This document shows positions 268 to 48,424 of a DNA stretch of 64,000 nucleotides, in pieces. The first letter of the stretch is position 1, and every line of letters begins with the position of its first letter. A program made the translations under genes and the position numbers. Source of the DNA: Pavona decussata (lineage: Eukaryota); NCBI GenBank assembly GCA_977016875.1, contig CDRNST010000275.1, forward strand, positions 248,001 to 312,000, read 5' to 3'. The notes beneath the pieces were generated by a model, which was given only the letters and a program-made list of their open reading frames with translations, was not told the origin of the DNA and did not search any database.

Positions 268-2948
268 TAACAAGCCACCCCTACCCTTGGAAGTGGGAGC
301 TACATCAAGGGATTGTCCCACCAGGGGAAGATTATTTCGACTACTCTCCAACAGAAGCTGCCTTGTGGCCTGCTCGGCATAGATTAACGGAATTTGCCAC
401 TCTGACGAGGGAGAACGTGTCCAGTTTTCATTTCAGTGATTTTAAGGTAAATATTAGGTTATCTGAATATTTGCAATTGGCCCTGTTGGGATTTGGAGTT
501 ATCATCTTTCAATTTTAATTTTTTGAAGACTTATATGGCTAGAATGGTAGAGAGGTATGTATTCTTTTTTTTTTTTTTTTTTCAGGGTTTATTAAATAAC
601 AAAAAGGACTGTTAATTAAAATTAACAACGCTTATAGAGTAAAAGCGGTTTGAGATTGAGTGTCGCAAAACCAAACCAACGTAATTACGCTGACGAACCA
701 CAAAGGACGTAAGCAGCACAATGAACCAATTAGAATTCAAGCAAATGCATGTAACCAAAACTCGGCGTGTAAACAAGTCACTGTTGGTTTTGGTTTGACT
801 TCCATTGGTTGAGAACATCGCGCAGAATGCCTATTTTTTTTTTTTTTATTTAACAACTTTATTAACACTTGAAAAGCCTTAGATATTACAATTTAGTCCT
901 GAACATTTCTCAATTATAAGTAATACCATTAAAATTCTTGGCTTGACACCGAAAAGTACAATTACATAATTGGTCTTTAAGTTAATATTACACAATAAGG
1001 ATGGAAAAATTTAACTGCCTAAAATAAAATAGGTTCCTCAAATGGTTTCCATTTTTTGTTGAACATATTGATTTTGTTTGACTTAAAAGCTATATATTTT
1101 TCCGTTTCGTATTTCTCAAGCAAAATTCTCTTAAAGTAGATGAAAGAAGGTTTTATGTTCTTATACCTACAGGTCCACAGGAAGTTTTTACTTAGAATAA
1201 TTATATAATTAACCAGATCCATCTCCTCCTTTAGAAATCCTATAACAACTTGACGCAACGAGAGACATCTGCACCCACAAAGCTTATATAAAATGTGAGC
1301 AATAACCTCATTCCAAAAGGAGTTTGAAAAAGCGCAACTAAATAAGATATGACTTAGAGTTTCGAGTGTCTCATGGCAAAAACAGCAGATGGGGCCTGAA
1401 GCGTAGCCTATTTTATAAAGTATATCATTTGTGTACAAAATAGAATTTAAACCTTATATTGAAAGGAGCGTATATAAGGTTCATTTGCAACTGTTATCGG
1501 CAGCAGGTAGACGTTCAAAATTTGGTCATCTCCCAAATCAAAATCTTCACCCAACCTCGCCCATTTCCTAGGCCTTTCATATACATGTTTTATCAAATAG
1601 CTGTAATAATCGCAGCATTGAAACGTTTCCAAATTAAGAACCACCTTAAACTGCTTAAAATTAGGCGAAGTTGATGTGCGTAAGTTTTGTGGAATTGATT
1701 GTCTTAGACCTGTCCATGTCAGGAAATTAGACTTTGTTAATCCCTGTCTTTTCACAGCATTAAAGGATGCGATATTTGTTTTATCAAAAAGTAAATCTTT
1801 TGAGTATTTAATACCATGATCAAAATATTGTCTATAAAACATATTCTTGATGTCAACGTTATATGGTTCCCTGGATTCCATTTGTCAGAGTGACAAAAAT
1901 AAAAACACCCGTTCTCAATTTAAACTTGAATCACATTTTAGCATCCTCCAAAGTGATTTAACGAGAGCATGCTTGTAGATGAAGTTAAGATGTTGAATTT
2001 TGTTGTCTAAGCTAGTACTGAATTCAGGACTAGAAGCAAAAGATGTCGTTTTGTAATCGTGAAAGGCTTTCAAGGGACCACTTGTTTTTGAAGATTTAGT
2101 AATGCAAAGCTCCACACGAAAGGTATCATTGTTCTTTCTTCGACTGCCATTTTCCATCAAACATAGACAGATGAGTATGAAAAATAAAATATTTTTATTA
2201 ATTTCAAAGCTTGTACATCCTTTGTACTCTAGCGCCCTCTTTCAGTGGTTATCGGTTAATAAGCGTTCCTACTCCGTAAAGCTCCCAAGTTGAATGCAAT
2301 TGATTGGGGTTACAAAAAGCGTTGATATAAAATAGATAAATGACATTTAATTTACTGAGCCTTCAGTATACTCTTGGTATTACAGTTCTCTTTTCTCAAG
2401 GCTTCAACTCGCCTTTTAATTCACACTTGGTTGTCAAAATAGAAGTAATTTTCCTGTCGCCAGTAACCGCCCTGCTGGGTGCTTATAATCGAATCACTGC
2501 CAGTAGATTTGGATTAGCTCACCGCTCCGAATCTCGTAGGCCAGTGACTAGAGAACCAATCTGACTCTTTTTACTTCTCCTAAAACCCTAGATTAATTAG
2601 TAAGGATGGATATCAAGTCTAAACCCTTCTTTTGCCTCGCTTTACATTAAGGATGCACGTGTTATCGAAGAAAAAGAAGAACGAACAAAACGGATGACTG
2701 GAAAGGCCATCCAAGAACTGAAAAACAACAAGTCAATCAGAAATGCTCTTGTTGGAAAATTGGCGGTTGCCGTCAAAAAGACGATCGAGAGTATGGTTGA
2801 TGGAGAGCAAGTCACTGAAGAAACGGTGAAAGAGCTGATTGATATGGAGAAACTTTCCTATGGGCATCCTGAAGTTCAGAGGACGGAGGAGAGCAGGCAG
2901 CAATACGCAGCGGCTGTTTTTAATGCTTGCCGAAATGCCGCACTGTAA
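268..2948 (+). CDS. 3' end of paralog 1 of the giant uncharacterised protein: exons 268-446 and 2652-2948; upstream exons mostly outside the window
   Basis: Exon 268-446 (tgcag|...|gtaaat; TSHPYPWKWELHQGIVPPGEDYFDYSP...) has the same 179-nt length as exon 17677-17855 and about 70% aa identity. Exon 2652-2948 (DARVIEEKEERTKRMTGKAIQEL...RNAAL*) matches exon 18957-19277. Confidence 0.85.
633..820. repeat. Partial copy of an interspersed non-autonomous repeat (TAGAG..TTTCAATTGAGTGTCG family)
   Basis: Similar to the fuller copy at 33094-33379 (attgagtgtcg, aaaccaaa, ccaat motifs). Confidence 0.55.
833..1881 (-). mobile_element. 5'-truncated LINE (L1/Tx1-like) 3' fragment in an intron of paralog 1
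   Basis: ORFs 1447-1881 and 1019-1438 encode a LINE ORF2 C-terminus with a zf-RVT-type motif (RSFQYK...YTNDILYKIG...CCFCHETLETLSHILFSC). A poly-A tail reads as a T-run at 833-847. Confidence 0.9.
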
Positions 2949-8318: not shown

Positions 8319-8947
8319 AGCAATTATTCAAAGAGAGAAAAAAAGGGGCAAATATAGAAGCAGCCTGAACTGGTGAGGCTTTACATGCTTCATTTCACTC
8401 CTGGGTGTATTGGAGAGGGGATATGTTAACGAAAAACAGTGATGGAGAAGTACGAGTGAAGCGGAGGAAATTGATTTAATACCAAAATGTTCATGGTATC
8501 AAACAAAAATAATTCCTTCCGCCAAAAATACATGAGTGCACTACGAAACTTTTGCATCCTATTACTCGGCCCCTTTCCTGTCCTCCCGTTCACACCGAAA
8601 CCAAAACGATTTTCGACTTGTGAATAATACCAGCCACTGTCCGGGTAAGTAAGCCCGCTCTCGATCTTTGAACGGATATATCGGAGGAGATGTCCCACAC
8701 CGGGCCCAAGAGAGCGAAGTCATCGAACCTATTGTCGGTGTGATCAGAAATACCAATGTGGTCAGTTCAATGAATAGTATAAAATTAAAACCAGCAATCG
8801 TCTGTTCACCTGACCCACAAGGGCTGCTTCCCTTATGGGTTAAGGAGAAGAACATCATTTCATGAAACTTTTGTTTTGGTCTTCTTCCAGCCCCACTGGT
8901 CTGTGTGCCATTTAAAGTACCCATGCGCATGCAATCATCATCTTCTT

Positions 8948-11900
8948 ATGGACGAAGCGAACGACAACACTCCTGAAATGCCTGGAGGCAATCAGCAACA
9001 GAGTTCGCCGAAACTGGCTCAAAATGGAAGTCCCCTCGATAATACTGCTGCAGATGAGTTGAAGGCAATCTTAACAACTTTGGAAGCGCTTCCGTTTAAA
9101 GACGAAAAGCAGAAGACTTCCTTATTTGAAAAAGTTCGTCGTTTGGAAGAATATCACGTAATTCAAGTTTTCAATCTGGGGGTTGTGCCTCTGCAAAACT
9201 ATATGACTGACTGTCCAGAATTTGTTGAGGAAGTGACAAAGCTTTTTGATATTTGCTTCTCTTTTTGCTACACAGGCGACGTAACAAAAATAGTTGCTTT
9301 TGATTTCTATGCAAAAGCTTTAAAATTCTGCTTTCCTCCCCAACCAAAGCAATGCCTTTCAACCGAAGTTGTCTCCATGTTAGTGGAACTTGTTGTGATT
9401 TTTCAGAAGGGGGGATTTGCTACCATCGTCACCGAAAAAACTGAGCAGCAAGCGAACTCGCAGACAAAAATCCGTGGGACCAAACATTTCTTCGTGGAAC
9501 TACTCGCGATATTTGAAAACAGAAGAGATGGTGGTTGTATTAAAGAAATTGTTCGTGAAACATTGAATGTTGTCTCTGCTGACGCTGAAATATCTTGTAT
9601 CGAGGAACATGTGGTGCATAATGTGGCTTTGAGAAGTGATCACTTGGTGTCACCAGTTTTGTTGACAAATTGGATGAGACTACTGAAATTAGAGTACGTC
9701 AGCAATGGCTTTGCATCTGCTTTGGCCAAGATGGGCGCCTATCGATGCACAAGACAAGTTTTGTCCATTTCCCCTCTTAGTCTGCTCGGTACTAGCCCTC
9801 AAACAAATAATTTTCGTTACGAATCAACTATGACCGATGTTCTGAGTGTTCTTGAAGAAATTAAGGCAAGTGGTACCGAAATGAACCTCTCTTCCGACGA
9901 GGAAAGACTGTATATATTCTTCAAACGTGTATATAATTTTTTTCTCCGTCGTGAAATGATGGAGACATGTCTTAAGGTCCTAGCAACGACAAGCATCAGC
10001 AACAAAGTGCTTGAAGAGGTCCTTGACCAGTTCTGTAAAGAAGATCGACCGGCACAACATGTTATGTTCTCAATGGCGGCTGACGTCCGGAAGGCAGAGG
10101 CTTTTGACCTTATCTTTAAAGTTTTGTTGTTATTCCCAGGGGGAGAACTAGTCAACAAAGTGATGAAATTCTGGAGGCAAACTTTTTCTGACGATGAAGG
10201 CTGCCAAAAGCTTGCAAGTTTGATGGTGCTATTCGTGGCAGGACCACCTAGCGAAGAACGTTGTATTTTAGAAGAAAGGGCGGAAAGGACATGGAGTTTT
10301 TTGGATTGGCTTCCTTCCTCTTTGATGCCTTTATTAACATTTTGGTATTCTTTCCTTTCGTCCTTTATCAAGATATTTCCATCTACGTTTCAAAGACGTC
10401 CAGAAGTACTGGTCTTTATCCACAAAGCTCTTCTGGCTGCACGAGTTCCCGTTGGCGAAAAGCGTAAAGCTTATATCAGCTTTGAACTGATGCCAACTCT
10501 TGCGTTCTTAGAGTGGATCTCCCAACAAAAACTGACTGAAGAAGTTAGGAACGAGATGATTTGGCTTCTCATGTGCTGCGCCGATGGCGACTGTCTGAGC
10601 CTTAACTGGGAATTTTCAATAAATATCATTAAACAGTTGAGTCTCTGTCAACAGCTGCCATTCAGCTCCACAAGAGATCTTCTTCGAGAAGTAAATTATT
10701 TAGCTAAACAGTTCAAGGATCGAGAGAAGAGGGTTTTCCAAGAGTTCGTTGCAGGAGTAGCATCAAATGAAAGCCTTGATTTGAGGGATGAGATCCTGTC
10801 TGAGATTCTTGGCTTCGTCAAACGTTTTGTTGACAAGGATAGGCCCATGAAGACTATTCCCTCCAATGTGTTGCAGCTACTCTCGTTGGTATCAGCTACT
10901 CCTATATCAGGTGACCGAAGAGTTAGAATACTGCAGAAATCAAAGGAGTCCAGCAAAGGTTTATTAAGCAGTATACGCATTTTGGATCTGACAAAGTCCC
11001 TTTGCTACGGAGATGGAGCAAATGAATATTTTGATCTTCTGTATACTGCATTTGTAGACATACTTAAAGAAGAGAAAAATTTGTGTAGGACGTTTTATGA
11101 ACAACAACTCCGGTATCCTATAACATTCCAACTTCAAAAAGTGTGGGTTTTGGAAGTCGCGCGATTGATGTCTTTAAGTTCTTTCAACGAAGAGATAGAC
11201 GGCTGGTATTGTTTGCCTGTTCTTCGCGAAGTATCGGGCATCGTGTCTGAATCCGAGATGTTGCAATTTTTTCGAGAAGTAAGGGCAAGTACCGAGAAAC
11301 TTTTGAATGGCATGACGAGCCGAAACTTCATTACTTCATCTCCTGATGCCCCTGACCGTGTACCAGAGACTTTTGTTTCATGCCTAGTTCACGTCGTTAG
11401 ATCAGTTGCGTTCTCCACTGAAGAAAAGGTGCTGTTAATCCAGAGGTTTTGTGAAAGTTTCCTTAGTAGCCCAGATATTTTATCAGATCAGGACATGGAG
11501 TACGCGTTCTGCAATTTGATTCCCCTATCTTGCACTGAAAAGGACGGCTGTGCAAGCAACCACGAAGAGATGCGGCTGACGTTAGACCAGATCATGGCTG
11601 TGCTGGAAAATCCTACGATAATGACAAGCCTTTCAAGGATCCCAGCAGACAGCCATAGATCTTTATTTACTGTCCTGTCCATGATGAACTTCAAGTCATT
11701 CTCCAAGGATAGCCTGATGGACGTATACCAGTTCATTGGATCCCGAAAAGATTTAGACAAGCGTTTCTTTGCCCATTTCTTGCCTGTTCTACAAGTGGCT
11801 ATCCAAAATTCGACTAGTGTGCAGGCTGTACTGGAACTCTTGCAGGAAATGATTTGTGTTATTGGCGCTATTCCAGCAGAGCTGATTCCCATCACGATGC

Positions 11901-14900
11901 TTAGTTTTGAATACCTGTTCCAAAGCCGAGTCGACAAACATGAGAGGGAAAGATTTGTTAAGAATGTCATCATGAAATGGGATTCCCCACCAAACTCTTC
12001 TGTTCTCTCCTACTTGGAAGTGCCCCAGCTTCTTTGGAAAGTGTACACTACCACTGACTGCCCAGCCAAGGTATCTGAGCTGACAGACCGTACACGAGAA
12101 ATTCTCAAGAAAGTGAACGAAAGAGTGGAAAGTTATTGCATCTTGGGAGACGCTTTACAATTGGAGCCTCAGTATAGGAATGAAAGAAGAATTTCATGTT
12201 GCGAGCTTGAATGGCTTGTCTGCCATTCTTCCCTTTCAACTGAAGAGGCAGCTCTTGCATGCAGCCTCATCTTTGGTGAGGTTCTATTCAGTGAGCGACT
12301 TAGATGTTTCACCTTGCCAGTGATCCAAATAGAAGATGTCTGTTTCACGATTGCACCCGAAGAAACAACAACCGCGCAAGTTCCCGGCAGTAACAACGTT
12401 TCAGCACCCACTGCTGCAATGGCATCTGTAGGGAACGAATCTTCTGTCACTGAGTCACAAAATACCAGTTTAACACCAGTGCTTATTGCCCAGAAAATAA
12501 TCCGACACTTAAAACGTATACTCGGGCAAGAAGAAGACCTCACTGAAATTGCAAATTTGCTTTGGAAACTTCTTTTCAGTACATCATCTGGTTGTGCTGA
12601 GTGTGGAACACCTTCTCCCTTTCTTGACGAAAATGTGGAAGTTTTCTTGTCCATATTAGCCGCGACCTCGTCCACAGAAGTTCTCTTATTTTGGGCTAAA
12701 CTAAATAGGCACTACGTTTCCCAGTGCTCAGAAGTTATCTTGAAAGCCTGCAAGAAGATTGATGATGCAGAGGGTGTGACCAAGGAGGCTTGTTTAAGTT
12801 TTCATACTGCGGTTTACAACACAATGGAAGCAATGCGTAGGAAGACACCTACTACCTCATCTGTGTTTCTCGGCATGGTCATTCAACAGCCTGCATGGTG
12901 TTTCCGGCTTGTGAAGCCCCAGCTTAGCCACCTGAGTAACATGTTGGGGAGCCGTTTACCTATTGATGTAACCTTGGCAGTTCTCCGCCTCTTTCAAGTC
13001 AATGTCCAAGCTGGAGTAACAGTTGGAGAGATCGTCTCTTCCTGGTCGTCCACACAGCAGGCAGTGGAACTGGTCAAAAGTGTGGAGTTGTGTTGTCAAG
13101 AAGAAGAAATGTCTTCCTTAAACGCAGCTCAAAGTGAATTTGTCTGGCAACTCGCTGAAGCGTATGGTCGGTTGTACAAGAACTCGTGTAAAGATCTTTT
13201 AGTCAGGTTAAAGGAACTTACTGTATTGTACGACCCAGAGGATGCATATGGCCTCAACCGTTTGCCAAAGTGGCGACAAATGATGATAGCAGACGGCTTT
13301 TCCGTTCATGCGGTTGACTGCTGGTGTATAGCCTTCCTGATGACACCACTTGAGGACCTTACTTCTCGTGATGTCGATGCGATTGTTGATCTAAACTCTC
13401 GCTCTTTGCAACTTGTGCCATCTATTTCTCAAGAAATTAAGACCTGCATTTTTCCTGAGGAAGATTTTAAAGTTATGCGAGGGAAAAGCATCAAGGAATC
13501 ACAAACTAAAGAACGTCTTCGACTAGCGAGGTTGCTGGGCGAGTTCATAAACGTTTTAAAAAAAAGAAAACTCGAAGAAAATCCCAAAGATGCTGTTATC
13601 AGAGAAATAGTTGTCGACGCTTGTGATGAGCTTTGCCGAGCCCACTTAAAGAAAAACAGAAGAAACGATCTCTATATAATCCATGAGCAGAAGCTTAAGG
13701 CTTTATTCACCGAGGTATTTGGCAAGCAGCGTAAAACCCACGATGAAGCAGAGTGTGCTGGCATGCTTAAACAACAAGCAGATGGAGATAAAATAAAAGT
13801 GCCATTGTCTGTTGCAAGACAGTCATCTTACCTACACGAGAATCTTCCACGTGTACTGAACCACCGTGACGTTTATGAACCATTGCTGGTGCTTCTGAGG
13901 CGCTGGTTATCTGGAATTTCCATCAGACCAGTCCTTGCCGCTCATACACGACAGGTTGTCCAGCTGCTATTTTCAATTCACTCTTCTGAAGTGCGAGCTG
14001 TCCAAATAAAGGAATTGCACGGCGCCATTGAAGACCACATTTTATCACTCGAAAACAACCAAGCTCTTATTGCCAATCTGCAAGCTGCGGGATATAACCA
14101 GGGAAGGCAAAGTAGCCTACATCTGTGGTCGTCTCCCTCGGTGGAGTGTGCGGGGTACCTCAGCAAGATAGAGTCTGCTGATAGCAGAAGATTCGAGAAG
14201 AAACTAACGAAGGTCCTAAGACGTCTCTGGAACGAGTGGAAGGACATCCTTTACATGTTTGGTGTTGCGTCCATTAAAGTTAGTGAAGCAATCGTTTGTA
14301 CGAAGGATCTCTTTGGTGTTCAGGATTCCTTGAAGGAGATGGAGGAGCAAATGTCTGCTGTTAAGGAAATGCTCAGTCGCATGCAGTTGAAAAATCCGGA
14401 CCTTGACAGAAGAGTAGAAGAATTGATGCGCCAGGAACAACGACATCGCGCGAGGATTAAAAAACTGTACAAGAGTAAGGAGGTGAGAAATGGCTAGTGA
14501 AAAATCTATTTTATTTCTTACAGCTGTATCTACAATTAGTATAATTATGTCATTTCCCTCAGCCCGGTCATATATTCGTCGTTTGCTGACGATGGCCATT
14601 AAGTAAGCTGTTTTTTTTATCTATTTTATTTAATTCAATAATTATTCAGGGGCATCCAATTTAGCAGAGCAAGTTTAAATGGAGCCCTGACACAGTACAA
14701 GACAAACATTGAAACGTGAAAAAGAAAAAACTAGACAAATAATTAAGTTATACATGCTGCATGTTCGGCAGGCGTTATTGCTTAAGATGGCACTTAAGTT
14801 TAGTTTTAAACTCACTGAACGCCTCTACCTGTCTAATGGTTCTCGGGATGGTGTTGTAAGTTCGAGCGCCAGTTATTCTGAAGCTCCCCTGATACTTAGC

Positions 14901-17900
14901 AGTTTTTGCGAAGGGAGGGCGCAACAAATCACGGCTTCTGGTGTTATAGCCGTGGTAAAGATGCGCGTGCCTAAACTCTGAAAGTAAGTACGAAGGCGCT
15001 ATTCCATGAAGACATTTGTGGACTAAAAGGCATTTGAGATAATTTCTGCGCGCTTGTAGATTGGGCCAACCAAGTGTTGATTTTAACTCCTCAGCCCCGA
15101 CTGATCGACCTTCAATAATGCATGCAGCACGTCTATTTAGCTTACCTAGGTAATCTTTGCTCCCAGCCCCACAACTGTCCCAGACAGGCGAACAGTAATC
15201 AAATAATGGCAAAACTATGGTATTGTAGAGCAGTAGGCAAGTTGGCTTGGGGAGAACCTTACGCGCTCGACGCAGAACACCTAATCTTGACGAGATCTTG
15301 TTACCAATATATTCTATGTGGTCCTTCCAGGATAGAGTGTTGTCTAGAAGGACCCCAAGGTATTTGAACTTATAAACCCTTTCTAAACGCGTGTTACTGA
15401 TTTCAATAACTAGATCGTCAGCCTCTGTGGTCCTCTAATGGGTGCCAACAAGCATAATCTTCGTTTTCTCAAGATTAAGTATCAAAAAGTTTACATAGCA
15501 TTGTATACATAGCATTGAATAGCATTTTACATAGCATTGTATACATTGTATAAAGAAGACTCTGGCAACGCGGAAGATGACAGTTCTAAAATTGGTGTAG
15601 CACACTGCTGCGAGTTGATGACGGTAGTTCGACTGATTAACAGAGTGCGTCTGTGTAAGATTTTAAGTCAAAGTAATTGTTGGTAACCTTATCGTACCTA
15701 CCTTTTCAATTTTATCATTATTTTGAAAACGATCAGGACTTCGTATGATGATCGAAATACACAATATTTCACCGTTGCAGTGTGCGTGCCAATGAATAAG
15801 GGCAGCTACTCTGTTAGGTCTCCTTTTTATATTGAGTCGTTAAGCAATCTTATATTGCACATACAAACTACTTTTGTTACTGTCACACACATAAGATCTT
15901 TACGTTACGTCTTTTTAGTTCATCTTTGCCGGTTTGACGTCCATTTCAGTAGTGGTTTTACCTGATCTTTGGTTCTTACGATGAATCAGCTAGTTGCCCA
16001 ACTCATTATCTGATCCCTCTTTGAACTGTTTAAAACGAAACTGCTTGTTCAGGGGCTTCCCTTTTCTTTCCTTTTCTTTTCAAGTAAAATATACTGCCTC
16101 TTTATTATTCTTTAATTTTTACTGTTTTTAGGTCAGATTTAAAATAGCTTTAATTGAAAGATGTTCCACGCTGTTCGCCCAATTAACATGCCTGTTTATT
16201 CTTGAGGCAGTTCTCCTCATTGCTGGTCTGTCTTCTTTCACTCTAATTAGTAGATTGCAGCCGGCTTTAGTTCTTTTTATTTATAATCGTCATTATCCTT
16301 ATTATTGCAGTCGAAAAGTGAGGATGATGGCGAAGGCGCTGATCAGAATGATGATGACAATGGCACTAAAGAAGAGGTAGAGAAGAAAAGAATGGAGTAT
16401 AACATGTGACTTGATAATGATAATTATTATTTTATACACAATTACTAGGACTAGTGTCGTAGACATAGGTTCACGTGGTAATGAAAATTGTTACAAGAGA
16501 GATTACTTATCTCGTGATGTCAAGAATATTGTGCTATCTTGCCGGGTGGGCTTCTTTAAAAGATCATTAAACTATAACCTCTCATGATTTTCTGAGTAAA
16601 ACTGGGAATGTATTTTAATTAGAATAACCACACCCACAGCATGATCAATAGGAAAATGCATTTTTTTTTCTTTAAATTTTTGTAGGGCCAAGCGCAACAT
16701 GAAAGTGGGAGATCGAAAAGCAAACCGAAAAAGTTTGTAGCCGTATGGGAAAACCGATTTCTGGAAAACGTGAAACTGTGCTCTGAGAGAATTCCAGGTG
16801 AGTTAACATTATAGCACTTCTCTAATTCGGAAGGTATAAGATAAACATGAAGAATCAAATACATGTAGAACAAACACTTGTCGTTTTTTTTTTATTACGT
16901 AAACCAAGATGAAACCATACATAGCAAACATAATTCATGCAGTCGTTTCGAGATTGAGATAAATAATTTTGCTTAATGGCACCGAGGATTGACAGAAAAC
17001 AGTTAACGGATATGCATGCGTAAATGGAAAATCAAGTTTTGTAATTGTTGATTGCGTCTCCGTTTGCAGACATCAGACCTGTTTATCCAAGCATTTAAAT
17101 TCATATATTTCCCTTCTAACGTGTTCTTTAAATCATTTTTGTCTTCAAGGATGCTACGCACCCAATGGTTTTCACTCCGAGAAGCCAGTGCTGTGCGCTC
17201 TGTCAGTGGATAACAGGATTCTGACAGTTTTCAAGGAAGAGCAAAATGGCCGAAGAGAAGAAATTGAAAATGTTGAAGTTAAGCTTTTTGAGGCTGGTAT
17301 GTACGTATATGGACTGCACTCGAGTGGGCATGATTACGTCACTGACGAGCTATGGGCTGCATTCTACAAGATGCTGTTGGATGAAGGATTGGTGCCTAGA
17401 ATTGTTTTGTCCAACGAAAGCCCCGGATTCGACTGGATTAAGGTCTTTGTGAAACCGGGTGAGTGACATTCAGTGGATTCTAAGTGAAAATGTGACAAAA
17501 CATTGTAAACTTTAACAGAAAGAGGTGATCCTCCTGTAAACTGCAGGGAATCCTTTCTAAACTTTGCTCATAAAGATGATTTGCCGGAAGTTATCTTTTT
17601 TCTCGGCGCCAGAACGTTCCACTGTGCACAAAATTTATAGCTCTAATTTGTACCCTAACGGTATTGTTATTTTCAGAGACAAACCATCCGTTTCCCTGGA
17701 AATGGGAGTTCCATCAAGGAATCGTGCCACCGGAGGAAGACTATTTTGACTACTCTCCAATACAAGCTGCCTTGTGGCCTGCCCTACAAGGACTAACCCA
17801 ATTTGTTTCTCTGACGAGCGAGAACGTGGCTAGCTTTCATTTCGACGATTTTCAGGTAATTATTAGACAATGACTTTGGCTTCATTTTAGTGACAAGCCT

Positions 17901-19277
17901 GAGTGTGCCGAGATATTATCATTTTTCAAGCACCATTAATTTGACCATACAGGGTGAATATTGAATTTATGCGTCATCTGCAAGAACCTGATCATGACCT
18001 TTATTCCTTAAACTTCTTCACTACCTCCTCCTAGCTTCCTTGTTAGCAGCAAGAACTATTCAATAGCATTCTCGCTCTGCATTATCCATGATTATAGCGA
18101 ATGATTCCTTTTGTGAAAAAATGTGGTTGCAAACTGTGCAAACTGCAACCTTTTGTTCTATATGGAGTAGCTGGGAAGCAGATATATAGCTATATATGTT
18201 ACCTGATTTACGGGGCAAGTAGAGAAGCGACACTGAACTCTGGTTGTCCTGAAATGTAGGAGAGATTTATTAAACCCCTCGTTTTTAACAAACCATAACT
18301 CGGGAAAGGAAGGCCACTCACCTGATCCAAATGTGTTTATTTTTACTCTTTCTTAAGTGGAGAAACAAGTAATGCTCTTGTTGAAAGGGAAGAGAGCGTT
18401 TGGAGGGTCATCAACCTTGAGCAAAGAATTAACAGTTCGAACAAGAGCATCCTTGAGAATGATGTGTTATTCTAGAACGTGACACAGACATACTCGGAAA
18501 AACGGAAATCTGAGTGCTACTATCAGGAGTCGAACCAGAGACCAGGAGCACTCGGATTTTCTTTTTTTCTGAGTATGCCTGTGTCACTTTCTAGAATAAC
18601 ACATCATTCTCATTCATTCACCAGGCTGGAAATATACCATGACATTTATTCCAAAGAGCATCCTTGTATATAAGTGATACCAACGTTTTACACAACTAAC
18701 GTTTTGATCAAGTGTATCCTTGTGTAAATGATATCACAATACATTTTGTTTGTCCTTTAACCCTGACGTCCGTATAAAACTATTGTGTACGTAGCTTCCC
18801 CCTCAGGTTGCCGAAGCGTCATGTTATCAACAACAGTACGTAAACTAGTCTTCCAAATATCCTGAAGACAACCCAACGATGTCACAATATTAACTACTTG
18901 GCCTGAGATTGGATATTTAGTAATATTTGGCTTCCTTGCTCTCACTTTTCATTTAGGATGTACGTGCTGTCGAGGAGAAAGAAACACGAACAAAACAGAT
19001 GATTGGACGAGCTATTCAGGAACTGACGAGCGAGCTGCGGATGTTGCACGGAAACGAAGAACCAATCAGAAAAGCTCTAGCGGGAAAATTGGCGTTTGCC
19101 GTCAAACAGACGATCAAGAAAATCCTTGATGGAGAGCAAGTCAATGAGGAGACAGTGAAGGAGCTAATTAATATGGAGAAACTCGCCTATGACCATCCTG
19201 AAGTACAGAAGACGCAGGAAAGTCGGAGACAATACGCAGCAGCTGTACTTTACATTTGCAAAAATGCAACACTGTAA
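8948..19277 (+). CDS. Giant uncharacterised protein (about 2173 aa): long alpha-helical N-terminus, C-terminal Cys-containing alpha/beta domain, helical tail. Exons 8948-14482, 16311-16376, 16686-16797, 17150-17458, 17677-17855, 18957-19277
   Basis: The first exon is open for 1845 codons and ends GAG|GTGAGA. All five introns are GT-AG with compatible phases (0,0,1,1,0), giving one continuous 6522-nt frame. The last two exons are conserved in the paralog at 268-2948. Confidence 0.85.
14615..15495 (-). mobile_element. 5'-truncated LINE (CR1/L2-type) 3' fragment in an intron of the giant gene
   Basis: Translation includes LNLEKTKIML...KYLGVLLDNTLSWKDHI...LPLFDYCSPVW...LGWPNL...YNTRSRDLLRPP...FKTKLK, typical of the C-terminal RT region. 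An A-rich tail lies at about 14610-14640. Confidence 0.9.
18455..18653. mobile_element. Foldback tRNA-derived SINE-like element, copy A
   Basis: An inverted arm precedes the forward body. The reverse-complemented B-box GGAGTCGAACC is at 18526-18536. TSD aagagcatccttg is at 18443-18455 and 18654-18666. Same family as 56977-57162. Confidence 0.8.
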
Positions 19278-19564
19278 ATTAATATATCCAATTAGTTTTT
19301 TTAAGGAATTAAGGCTCTCTAGCTTTTTAATCCGGTTTTGGAATCAAAGTTAATGGCACCAACTTACACACGGTAGATACTTTAAAGTACATCGGATTCC
19401 TTATGGACCAAACGCTATATGCGAGTCCTTTTTTCGTATAGCCAATAAAGTTTCGTATGTAAGTCATATTAATTGTTGTAATAAAATATCGTTCGTTTTG
19501 GTAGATACCTGATCAGATGACCTTCAGAGTCGTCACTTAGAAATTCGGATTTAGCCGTTAAGAA

Positions 19565-21395: not shown

Positions 21396-21632
21396 AGGTC
21401 CCGTTTCTCGAAAGTCCCGGTAACTTACAGGGCCCGATAAGTGTCTTTGGTGATAAATGTTTCTTAACAGAAGTCAATTTTTGTTAGTTTTGTATACTAA
21501 ATTTTAAAATCTTATAATTCTATGAAAACATTGGCCAAATACCATGTCTGCAATCAATGTGTAAAAAACATTTCAAAAGATACAAGTTTATCGTGCCCGG
21601 TAGTTACCGGGACTTTCGAGAAACGGGCTCCT
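21396..21632. mobile_element. MITE with TIRs of about 30 bp, immediately upstream of the NERD-helicase ORF
   Basis: ggtcccgtttctcgaaagtcccggtaact ... agttaccgggactttcgagaaacgggctcc. Confidence 0.85.
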
Positions 21633-21709
21633 CAGGCCCCACAAGCAAAGAGGATCGGGCGGCCCTGGGGACGAGCTACACGATAACGATAGTGAAAGAC
21701 GAAGTGGCA

Positions 21710-23729
21710 ATGGCTTCCTCGTTTACAGTACAAGGACCAGCTAATGAATCCCTTTGTAATTTGGAGGTAGCTTGTGATGCATCCCTTTGTAGACTTTTTC
21801 CTGAGTGGAAGAGAACTGATCGAACTTACATGTTCCCTCCGATTTTTCCATTCCGGTACATTGCTCCGACCGGCGAAGCCTCTGGCGCAGTTCCGCTTAG
21901 CAAGGACGTGAAGGGAGACGAAGCTGAATTGAGGATGTTTCGTGCTCTTGACAAGTTTGGACGAGAAGACAATCAGCCAATGTTCGTTCTGACGAAATTT
22001 GAATTTAAAGAATTCACCAAACAAGTTCTTTTGGGAAAACTCCCAACTGAAACTGTCGACTCTCTCTTCGCTAGTTTGAGTATAATGGACCTCCGGCTCG
22101 AGAAATCGATTTTCTTGTTGTGCACAGGAGGGCGGGAGTTGTCCTAGTAGAAGTAAAGGCAACGGAGAAGTTCAAAAGCAACCGCTATCTGGATGCTAAA
22201 AAACAGCTTGACGTAGCAGAAAAGGTTATTCGAGCTCTTTTGAATGCAATAGGCATAACACTTCCTGTTTACAAAGTTGTTGCCATGCCAAACGTGGCTG
22301 ACCCCGGCCGTGACGTTGCCGGCTACATCGATCTTCGAAAGCAACATTTAGTTTTGGGTGATAAGGACAGTGACGATGTCCGCCTACTTGTTCGTTGGTG
22401 GAAGGAACATTTTTGTGAAATGTGTTTTGACGAGGTAGGAGATACACTATTGAAGTTCATATCCATTCTTGTAGGACAGAGAGCGGCCATCAGCGCTACA
22501 GCCAACATTCTTGCAGGAGTGTCCAAAACAATTGATGAACAGAGCTTTCTTGAAAGGAGCTATGCTAAGCTTGCCAAGAAAGGGGAGCGTGGCTCTAAAA
22601 TGGTGGTAAAGCCAACTGTGAAAACCGGTTTAGGCATTTTGGCAAAACAATTTATGTTTTTGAACAGAGAACAACTACACGTATGGGAAGGCCCACGGTT
22701 GCAGATAATTATGGGTTCTCCAGGCAGTGGAAAGACAATTTTGCTTCAATTTAAGGCTTTGGAATGCGCAAAGAAGAATGAACAAGTGCTTGTTGTGGTA
22801 CCATCACCGCTTGACAAACTTTACACTGAATTCTTTACCAGGAATGGGTTAAACAGTGGTATAACTGTCGTCATCACTTTTCACCAACTTGCTGATTTTC
22901 TTTCCAAGGAAGCAGAGGTACCAACAGACCCATTCCATGTCTTTGTTGATGAGTTTCCAGCACTCTTTTTTGAAGAAAACAACTCTGAGTTACTAGAATC
23001 CTTCCGAGATTTCCTTTCGAAGCACCAGCATCAGTGGATTGTTGAAGATAGTGAGCAATTACTCCTTGCTGATCGATTTGAGTCATTTGAAAGGGAGCAA
23101 GACATGCACACTAGAATAGATCCCATACAAATTTCTTTATTTTGTTGTTTGTTATGCAAAGACAAAAACTTTGTATTTTCAACAAACCTGGTGACAATAA
23201 TGAGATACACAAATGAAATATACAACTTTCTTATTAAGCACTATTATCAGCTTTCGTCAGTAATTAAGTTGACAATTGATATGTCAAATCATGATGATTT
23301 CAACATCGATCAGACTGTTTCCAAATTACAAATTGGCCACAACATCTGTGGACCTCAGGTCATCGAGGAAAGAAGGACATATAAAACTTCCAAAGAACGT
23401 CTGCACCATTGCTTGCAGGTCATCAACAGTGAGCTCAATGAATGGTTGCTGCAGGATGACGAAGAAAAGCCTGATTTTTGCAAAGTTGCCATCCTAGTCA
23501 ACGACCAGAATGGGTTGATGAACTCTCTCCACACTTGAAGGGGCAAGGTATCCCAGTTTGTAGTATTGGAGATTTTAAAAATGCAGTTGTGCTGGATTAT
23601 GAAAGTCGTGCTTTATCTTATGAGTGGCCAATTGTGATTGCCATTTGCCAATCCAAGAGGAATTTTACGTCAACTTCACGAGCTACAGCTCGATTGCGAA
23701 TAATTTGGTGGCAGCAGTCTAGGAACTAG
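21710..23729 (+). pseudogene. Intronless NERD/PD-(D/E)xK nuclease + SF1 helicase (Schlafen-like C-terminus), about 673 aa when reconstructed; frameshifts at about 22100 and 23505
   Basis: Three overlapping ORFs join into one protein: GDEAE..F and EIDFLVVHRRAGVVLVEVK (NERD), AKKQL, NREQ...GSPGSGKT (Walker A), VFVDE (Walker B), and VVLDYESRALSYEWPIVI...TSRATARLRII (C-terminal helicase motifs). Confidence 0.85.
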
Positions 23730-48122: not shown

Positions 48123-48424
48123 TATTATTTTATTATAATTTTTTTTTAAGTAAAAAATATTATTTACCATCGGCAGTGTTTATAGCACAAGTGCTAGTGG
48201 GGCCGAGCATTAAACTTCATAAAAAAATAATACAAATTGAAAATAACATGGTTAAAAATCCCCACTGGCAGGAGGCCGATCAGCTGGCTTTTTTACAAGC
48301 GCGTCCGAGGAGTTGAACTTGGGGCTACCGAGAAACAACTCCAGCTAGCGGTCAGAGCGGGACTTGAACCCGGGACCACCGGATTTGAAGTCCGGCGCCC
48401 TACCCACTCGACCATGCTGCCTCC
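48123..48424 (-). mobile_element. Full-length tRNA-derived SINE, present only in duplication unit B
   Basis: The minus-strand head has A-box TGGTCGAGTGG and B-box GGTTCAAGTCC, with an AT-rich tail. TSD actaat is at 48117-48122 and 48425-48430. The empty site is at about 39688-39693. Confidence 0.88.

Follow-up and report, generated by a model that had tools for sequence, protein, structure and literature searches.

A spliced, tandemly amplified giant gene of corals carries an undescribed cysteine-bearing module with a predicted GNAT-like fold

Within a 64,000-nucleotide stretch of Pavona decussata DNA (contig CDRNST010000275.1, positions 248,001 to 312,000 of the forward strand; hereafter the window), free of N, lies a giant plus-strand gene that encodes a conserved module of ~350 amino acids (aa). 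The module comprises a first motif in the giant exon and a cysteine-bearing domain, and is followed by a helical tail of ~100 aa. Coding sequence totals 2151 codons—2173 with an optional exon—as established by direct reading of the sequence together with tblastn using RefSeq coral proteins. The parts of the gene are given below, with structural elements named after the predicted fold described further on.

8948..14482, plus strand: giant first coding exon, 1845 codons from the ATG at 8948, with the donor GT at 14483
14018..14482, plus strand: end of the giant exon, encoding the first half of the module, with the motif N-x(6-9)-L-x3-G-Y-x(4-9)-L-W at 14051-14137, one predicted beta strand and the start of a long predicted helical hairpin
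16311..16376, plus strand: optional acidic exon of 66 nucleotides (nt), 22 codons, which keeps the frame and is bordered by AG/GT; run X3 shows the joint 16376/16686
16686..16797, plus strand: exon A, encoding ...KKFVAVWENRFLENVKLCSERIP + G; linker, predicted GNAT strand beta1 (KFVAV), helix alpha1 and the first base of a Gly codon
17150..17458, plus strand: exon B, GA + CYAPNGFHSEKP...GFDWIKVFVKP; predicted strands beta2-beta5, helix alpha3 and the V-P motif, forming the GNAT-like core
17677..17855, plus strand: exon C, encoding ...EDYFDY...FHFDDFQ; end of the predicted GNAT-like domain, the (Y/F)(Y/F)D motif and the last strand
18957..19277, plus strand: last coding exon, 106 codons plus the stop TAA at 19275-19277; helical tail, poorly conserved outside corals

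An earlier reading of the window, made from its letters without database searches (the sequence-only reading), had proposed that a giant animal protein ends here in a cysteine-centered domain assembled only by splicing. All peptides that it quoted were located where it had placed them, including ENNQALIANLQAAGYN...LWSSP, which is encoded at 14051-14137 within an open reading frame (ORF) of 1873 codons (8876-14497, plus strand). Exons A, B, and C have AG/GT borders throughout. The intron at 16798-17149 splits a Gly codon after its first base (G|GA), directly before the Cys codon at 17152-17154, and this Cys sits in the exon B motif G-C-Y-x-P-x-G-x-H-x-E-K-P. The joined peptide RIPGCYAPNGFH is present in the RefSeq models of Orbicella, Montipora, Acropora, and Stylophora.

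The window gene is expressed and spliced. For the junctions, contigs of four public runs were placed on 14300-19300; three runs come from the same organism in different studies and one is a coral metatranscriptome. Three of the four are only presumed to be RNA, and the contigs prove the existence of spliced forms, not their abundance. Across this interval contig depth falls on exons only, save for two intronic repeats. The predicted junction that splits the Gly codon before the Cys is in use: run X1 contains a GT..AG joint 16797/17150, for which X3 and X8 show matching loose ends, and the joints 17458/17677 and 17855/18957 were each recovered in X1, X3, and X8. The optional exon is revealed by its joint in X3 only; the loose end that precedes it matches the end of the giant exon, and the Acropora and Montipora models carry an acidic insert at the same place. 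One element of the sequence-only reading had to be revised: the protein does not end with the cysteine-centered domain at 17855, as exon 18957-19277 adds 106 residues, with 63 % identity to Orbicella residues 2051-2154 in tblastn. For the analyses that follow, exons were searched one by one, and work on the joined domain used RefSeq homologues such as Orbicella P0032, which is 86-92 % identical to the window gene over exons A and B.

The gene belongs to a coral family whose members occur side by side. More than 120 close coral relatives (36-84 % identity) match the ORF at 8876-14497, and the named ones all come from Orbicella, Montipora, Acropora, or Stylophora. The tandem expansion suspected from the window is borne out by at least three head-to-tail copies within ~46 kb of the source contig, the window gene included; related corals likewise have two or three paralogues per contig. 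The end of the neighboring copy lies inside the window:

270-446 and 2649-2939, plus strand: last two exons of the upstream neighboring paralogue, 75 % and 59 % in tblastn against Orbicella residues 1992-2154

A third copy, in the same orientation, is located on the source contig ~33 kb upstream. Its giant exon (L008:10001-15505) is divided into two ORFs (1381 and 450 aa) by one in-frame stop, through which tblastn reads; the stop could mark a pseudogene, a polymorphism, or an assembly error.

Conservation is concentrated sharply along the protein. Against a Montipora protein, tblastn identity is 43 % in the giant exon, 86 % in exon B, 50 % in exon C, and 28 % in the last exon; relative to other corals, exon B is 86-88 % identical, and corals show hardly any variation between KFVAVW and GFDWIK. 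The observation lies far beyond chance: against complex-clade corals, identity is 86 % for the peptide of exon B and ~43 % for the giant exon. The same gap between robust and complex corals (86 % in exon B versus 43-49 % in the giant exon) points to purifying selection.

Upstream of the module, the first ~1690 residues appear to form a fast-evolving, anthozoan-specific region with no recognizable domain, judged from sequence comparison. A coral hidden Markov model (HMM) aligns with the Actinia protein along its full length, and with other lineages only beside the module; neither this HMM nor hhalign against Pelomyxa and Sycon found homology of the giant N-terminal region outside Anthozoa. The giant exon has no match in Pfam, NCBIfam, or PDB sequences, and PDB searches with the giant exon, a 14-sequence full-length profile, and the module profile likewise found nothing.

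The module itself reaches well beyond corals. A domain profile (A2) searched with HMMER against 1.84 billion representative proteins matched 118 proteins at E<=1e-3. Among the identified members outside corals are the anemone Actinia tenebrosa (1976 aa), the calcareous sponge Sycon ciliatum (1768 aa), and the amoebozoans Cavostelium, Pyxidicula, Pelomyxa, Mastigamoeba, and Mastigella; two further members are assigned to eukaryotes because their contigs hold fragmented, intron-type genes. In hhalign, the full-length coral profile matched Pelomyxa at 98.8 % and Sycon at 99.5 % probability, with the match confined to the module and beginning just before its first motif. The two halves travel together: in all members whose upstream sequence is long enough, bacterial ones among them, N-x(6-9)-L-x3-G-Y...L-W stands 110-170 aa ahead of the Cys motif. 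Two unplaced members (P0203 and P0222) show a compact arrangement in which N...GY...LW lies only 24 residues before the predicted GNAT-like core and the helical hairpin is lacking.

Conserved positions were summarized in a 28-sequence module alignment spanning four lineages (A4; numbering of Orbicella P0032:1688-2060). N26, C202, and P283 are invariant, and L33, G37, Y38, G201, P205, G207, H209, E211, N241, G250, L276, V282, and D328 are at least 90 % conserved. D156 is nearly invariant in a 38-sequence alignment of the domain. Conservation of the GCY cysteine, anticipated by the sequence-only reading, is thus close to complete: it is kept in 28 of 28 module sequences and 37 of 38 domain sequences. 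The family motif set—N-GY-LW; G-C-(Y/F)-x-P-x-G-x-H-x-E-x-P; E/A-N on beta3; V-P before beta5; and a late (Y/F)(Y/F)D—is complete in the window gene and in the 28 aligned members. Searches of Pfam, NCBIfam, and PADLOC with the window exons, coral C-termini, halves of the giant exon, and amoebozoan and bacterial members returned nothing significant.

Members also differ in their hydrophobic ends. Non-anthozoan eukaryotic members (P0162, P0164, P0239, P0240, P0150, and P0245) end in a hydrophobic C-terminal tail anchor, and the Mastigamoeba member bears the name putative C-tail anchored protein. In many of the bacterial members (P0223 and P0260-P0264), a hydrophobic segment stands at the N-terminus. 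The coral and anemone proteins have neither feature.

Structure prediction gave the module a recognizable relative. AlphaFold2 models had a mean predicted local distance difference test score (pLDDT) of 83.7 and a predicted TM-score (pTM) of 0.83 on the domain alignment, and 85.3 and 0.76 on the whole module. The elements of the domain model (E, strand; H, helix)—E7-11, H16-20, H40-46, E50-60, E63-74, E79-86, H94-106, E113-116, H122-125 ... E174-177—follow the order of the GNAT core, beta1-alpha1-alpha2-beta2-beta3-beta4-alpha3-beta5-alpha4-beta6/7. In Foldseek against the PDB, the top 50 matches are all GNAT acetyltransferases, with GCN5/PCAF at E ~1e-3, probability 1.00, and TM 0.4-0.5. A VIA-align comparison with 48,161 representatives, independent of Foldseek, again filled its first 50 places with GNATs alone (Z 7.4-8.8, 116-163 aligned residues, root-mean-square deviation 3-5.5 A), with 229 representative chains at Z >=5; over Foldseek's 1,000 best chains the highest Z was 9.2, and 88 chains had Z >=8. 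The stated background of VIA-align is Z 4-5, so that rank 50, at Z 7.4, lies well above it; given this margin and the homogeneity of the list, we consider that the Cys domain very likely has a GNAT-like fold, in keeping with the suggestion made from the window alone. A SUKH/SMI1-KNR4-like domain was also considered and was dropped, as no such fold occurs among the structural matches.

The module model extends this assignment upstream. It starts with H6-35, E53-60, and H66-168 at pLDDT ~90, and GNAT matches to it often begin at residues 30-60. We read the upstream strand (53-60) as a probable addition to the GNAT sheet and helices 66-168 as an inserted hairpin; since the strand joins the sheet in the model, both motifs singled out by the sequence-only reading would belong to one domain. 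The Cys is placed in a long coil between alpha1 (16-20) and alpha2 (40-46) at pLDDT 82-87. In GNAT enzymes the alpha1-alpha2 loop lines the acceptor-substrate cleft. The predicted topology and the size of the alpha/beta core are those of the GNAT superfamily (PA3270-type proteins, RimI/RimJ/RimL, GCN5/PCAF, and FdhC). What sets the module apart from these proteins is its alpha1-alpha2 loop of 20 residues, which bears the invariant Cys, together with an additional N-terminal element, a helical hairpin of ~100 residues, and its place within proteins of 1,000-4,400 aa.

Large bacterial proteins with both motifs, as described in the sequence-only reading, do exist, and their motifs agree with those of the coral protein in order and spacing. 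The module occurs in about a dozen giant proteins or clusters of bacteria, as against many eukaryotic ones. The 172-kb contig that encodes a 4355-aa member also has ABC-transporter and two-component genes, a 2292-aa member adjoins sigma-70 and efflux genes, and a member from a Candidatus Saganbacteria metagenome-assembled genome stands beside Rho, ACC, and S20 genes. The latter gene is followed, in the region L004:9525-19340, by a 126-aa ORF, a 1434-aa MutS_V gene, Fic, and a second MutS_V gene of 1433 aa, an unusual cluster of giant genes. Six more giant proteins, presumed bacterial, came from a word search; some of these also contain HEAT repeats or domains of the Peptidase_M48 or SAM-methyltransferase type, and HATPase_c weakly matches one other member. 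Giant proteins of uncultivated bacteria (e.g., Candidatus Saganbacteria NQU17491.1) share the two-part module with the coral protein, but differ in their flanks (HATPase_c, HEAT, Peptidase_M48, or SAM-methyltransferase) and often in the N-terminal hydrophobic segment, and their module is only 20-25 % identical to that of corals.

The sequence-only reading had derived the animal genes from bacteria. When the domain was placed in a maximum-likelihood tree, the six bacterial sequences came out as a single clade (100/99), with all eukaryotes as its sister group; Anthozoa are united on a long stem (100/98), and the other eukaryotes cluster with one another. No eukaryotic member falls inside the bacterial clade, and the eukaryotic members are more numerous and more diverse, so the proposed bacterial origin finds no support in the tree. 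With this topology, any transfer could have run in either direction, and an old eukaryotic gene with many losses would fit the data equally well.

What does the module do? From the modeled fold and the conserved positions, we give about an even chance to a transferase that would use acyl-CoA (acyl-coenzyme A) or a similar donor, with the loop Cys acting in catalysis or ligand binding, carried on a tandemly repeated coral gene. The order of parts would be an N-terminal helix-loop-strand (N...L...GY...LW), the long helical hairpin, and the GNAT-fold alpha/beta core. In such an active GNAT-type transferase, the Cys, the His and Glu of the same loop, the beta3 Asn, and the late Asp would make up the candidate active site; the Cys may serve as a covalent carrier of an acyl group or adduct, or as a ligand of substrate or metal, and the giant N-terminal part may act as a lineage-specific scaffold or recognition region. 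Several observations weigh against this proposal. Neither Pfam at E<=10 on 38 members nor PDB sequence and profile searches gave a sequence-level link to GNATs. In the beta4-alpha3 loop, corals have S-S-G-H-D, other eukaryotes N-G-H, and bacteria S-S-G, with one small-residue or Gly position; the 38-sequence alignment shows no clear Q/R-x-x-G-x-G/A there, the canonical motif that binds the CoA pyrophosphate. Individual Z values of 8-9 are moderate, and GNAT enzymes normally need no Cys nucleophile.

The lack of a clear acetyl-CoA motif A and of a sequence match to any GNAT family would also suit a noncatalytic, GNAT-like pseudoenzyme, in which Cys, His, Glu, and Asp bind a metal or stabilize the loop and the domain is a platform for binding or regulation within a giant scaffold. 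Enzymatically inactive proteins with a GNAT fold are known, and C-x6-H-x-E with a distant Asp is a plausible set of metal ligands. Yet some ten polar or Gly/Pro positions are kept from bacteria to corals, and the core is near-invariant in corals, a pattern more like that of an active site; we regard a pseudoenzyme as unlikely. The same invariant Cys, with its nearby His and Glu and the conserved Asn and Asp, could instead belong to a cysteine hydrolase or amidase (a peptidase, deacylase, or deamidase) built as a Cys-His-acid set on a GNAT-like scaffold, and the Peptidase_M48 domain of one bacterial member hints at a protein-processing context. This alternative is quite improbable: the top structural matches are all GNATs, with no papain-like, NlpC/P60, or transglutaminase fold among them, and Cys and His lie 7 residues apart in one loop, unlike known triads.

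Least probable of all, in our judgment, is the original proposal, in which the domain would be a PcfJ-like enzyme of bacterial conflict or modification, taken up by animals from bacteria and later supplied with introns. It draws on the shared motif order in giant bacterial proteins, on the patchy eukaryotic distribution, and on gene neighborhoods, one bacterial gene lying beside the giant Fic and MutS_V genes and another beside AbiEii. PcfJ kinship was tested with PF14284 (gathering score 25 bits), which matched pCF10 PcfJ (WP_011109626.1; L001:15874-17217:-) at 148.9 bits and 1e-43 and none of 38 family members at E<=10; it was also absent from coral C-termini and from full-length amoebozoan and bacterial proteins. 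The hhalign probability against PcfJ was 0.4 % with profile A1 and 0.07 % with profile A3, and the bacterial members have no PcfJ domain on record. At the level of sequence these two tests speak against PcfJ kinship, which we reject on that level, and the acquisition part of the proposal runs against the tree topology and the small number of bacterial clusters given above. PADLOC returned no matches, which leaves the conflict-system idea unsupported and a defense role only a guess. PcfJ, too, is an uncharacterized domain of bacteria in which a stretch containing Gly precedes a conserved Cys; EGSILRHCVGS of pCF10 superficially resembles IPGCYAPNG, and it is also similar to the bacterial motif cited in the sequence-only reading. 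PcfJ, however, is a plasmid protein of ~450 aa that differs from the coral family in architecture and context, and no HMM, profile, or alignment result links the two. The sequence-only reading probably fused two separate groups of proteins: the giant bacterial proteins are real, yet they are not PcfJ-like. A literature search on the coral RefSeq locus names and on PcfJ-like/PF14284 found no relevant paper.

Returning to the acyl-CoA-type transferase, a more specific version can be sketched tentatively, although we hold it to be rather doubtful as a whole. The module would be a thiol-dependent transferase on a GNAT fold, with the Cys as covalent intermediate, and would act as the conserved effector of giant proteins. 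In amoebae, sponge, and bacteria these proteins would be anchored in a membrane; those of corals would be soluble and tandemly amplified, and their fast-evolving N-terminal region would serve as the recognition part, possibly in immunity or symbiosis.

Several other features of the window accompany the gene. The last intron holds an element at 18454-18612 resembling a miniature inverted-repeat transposable element (MITE), with 55-nt inverted arms that are 91 % complementary and 49 nt apart. Overlapping it, 18475-18808 has very high contig depth in all four runs, with a mean word depth of 167,565 in the metatranscriptome for the bin 18475-18641; this depth indicates a very abundant, transcribed repeat. 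The other intronic repeat, 14634-15500, is covered by transcript contigs with many differences and carries a 145-aa ORF on the minus strand (14775-15212), which we take to resemble the C-terminal tail of ORF2 of a retrotransposon of the non-LTR (long terminal repeat) type. About 2.3 kb downstream of the gene, two adjacent long plus-strand ORFs (196 and 472 aa) occupy 21557-23538. One tRNA gene at 48349-48421 (minus strand, 39.6 bits) is the sole Rfam match in the window.

Together, the module is an undescribed family within a known fold: a strongly constrained, enzyme-like domain without a name in the libraries searched (Pfam, NCBIfam, PADLOC, and PDB sequences). Its setting is a set of expressed, tandemly amplified giant genes of reef-building corals, with relatives in an anemone, a calcareous sponge, Amoebozoa, and a few uncultivated bacteria. 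At ~350 aa and with one invariant Cys, the module is a tractable target for new GNAT-based chemistry, and it could help explain a coral gene family that is at present annotated wholly as uncharacterized.

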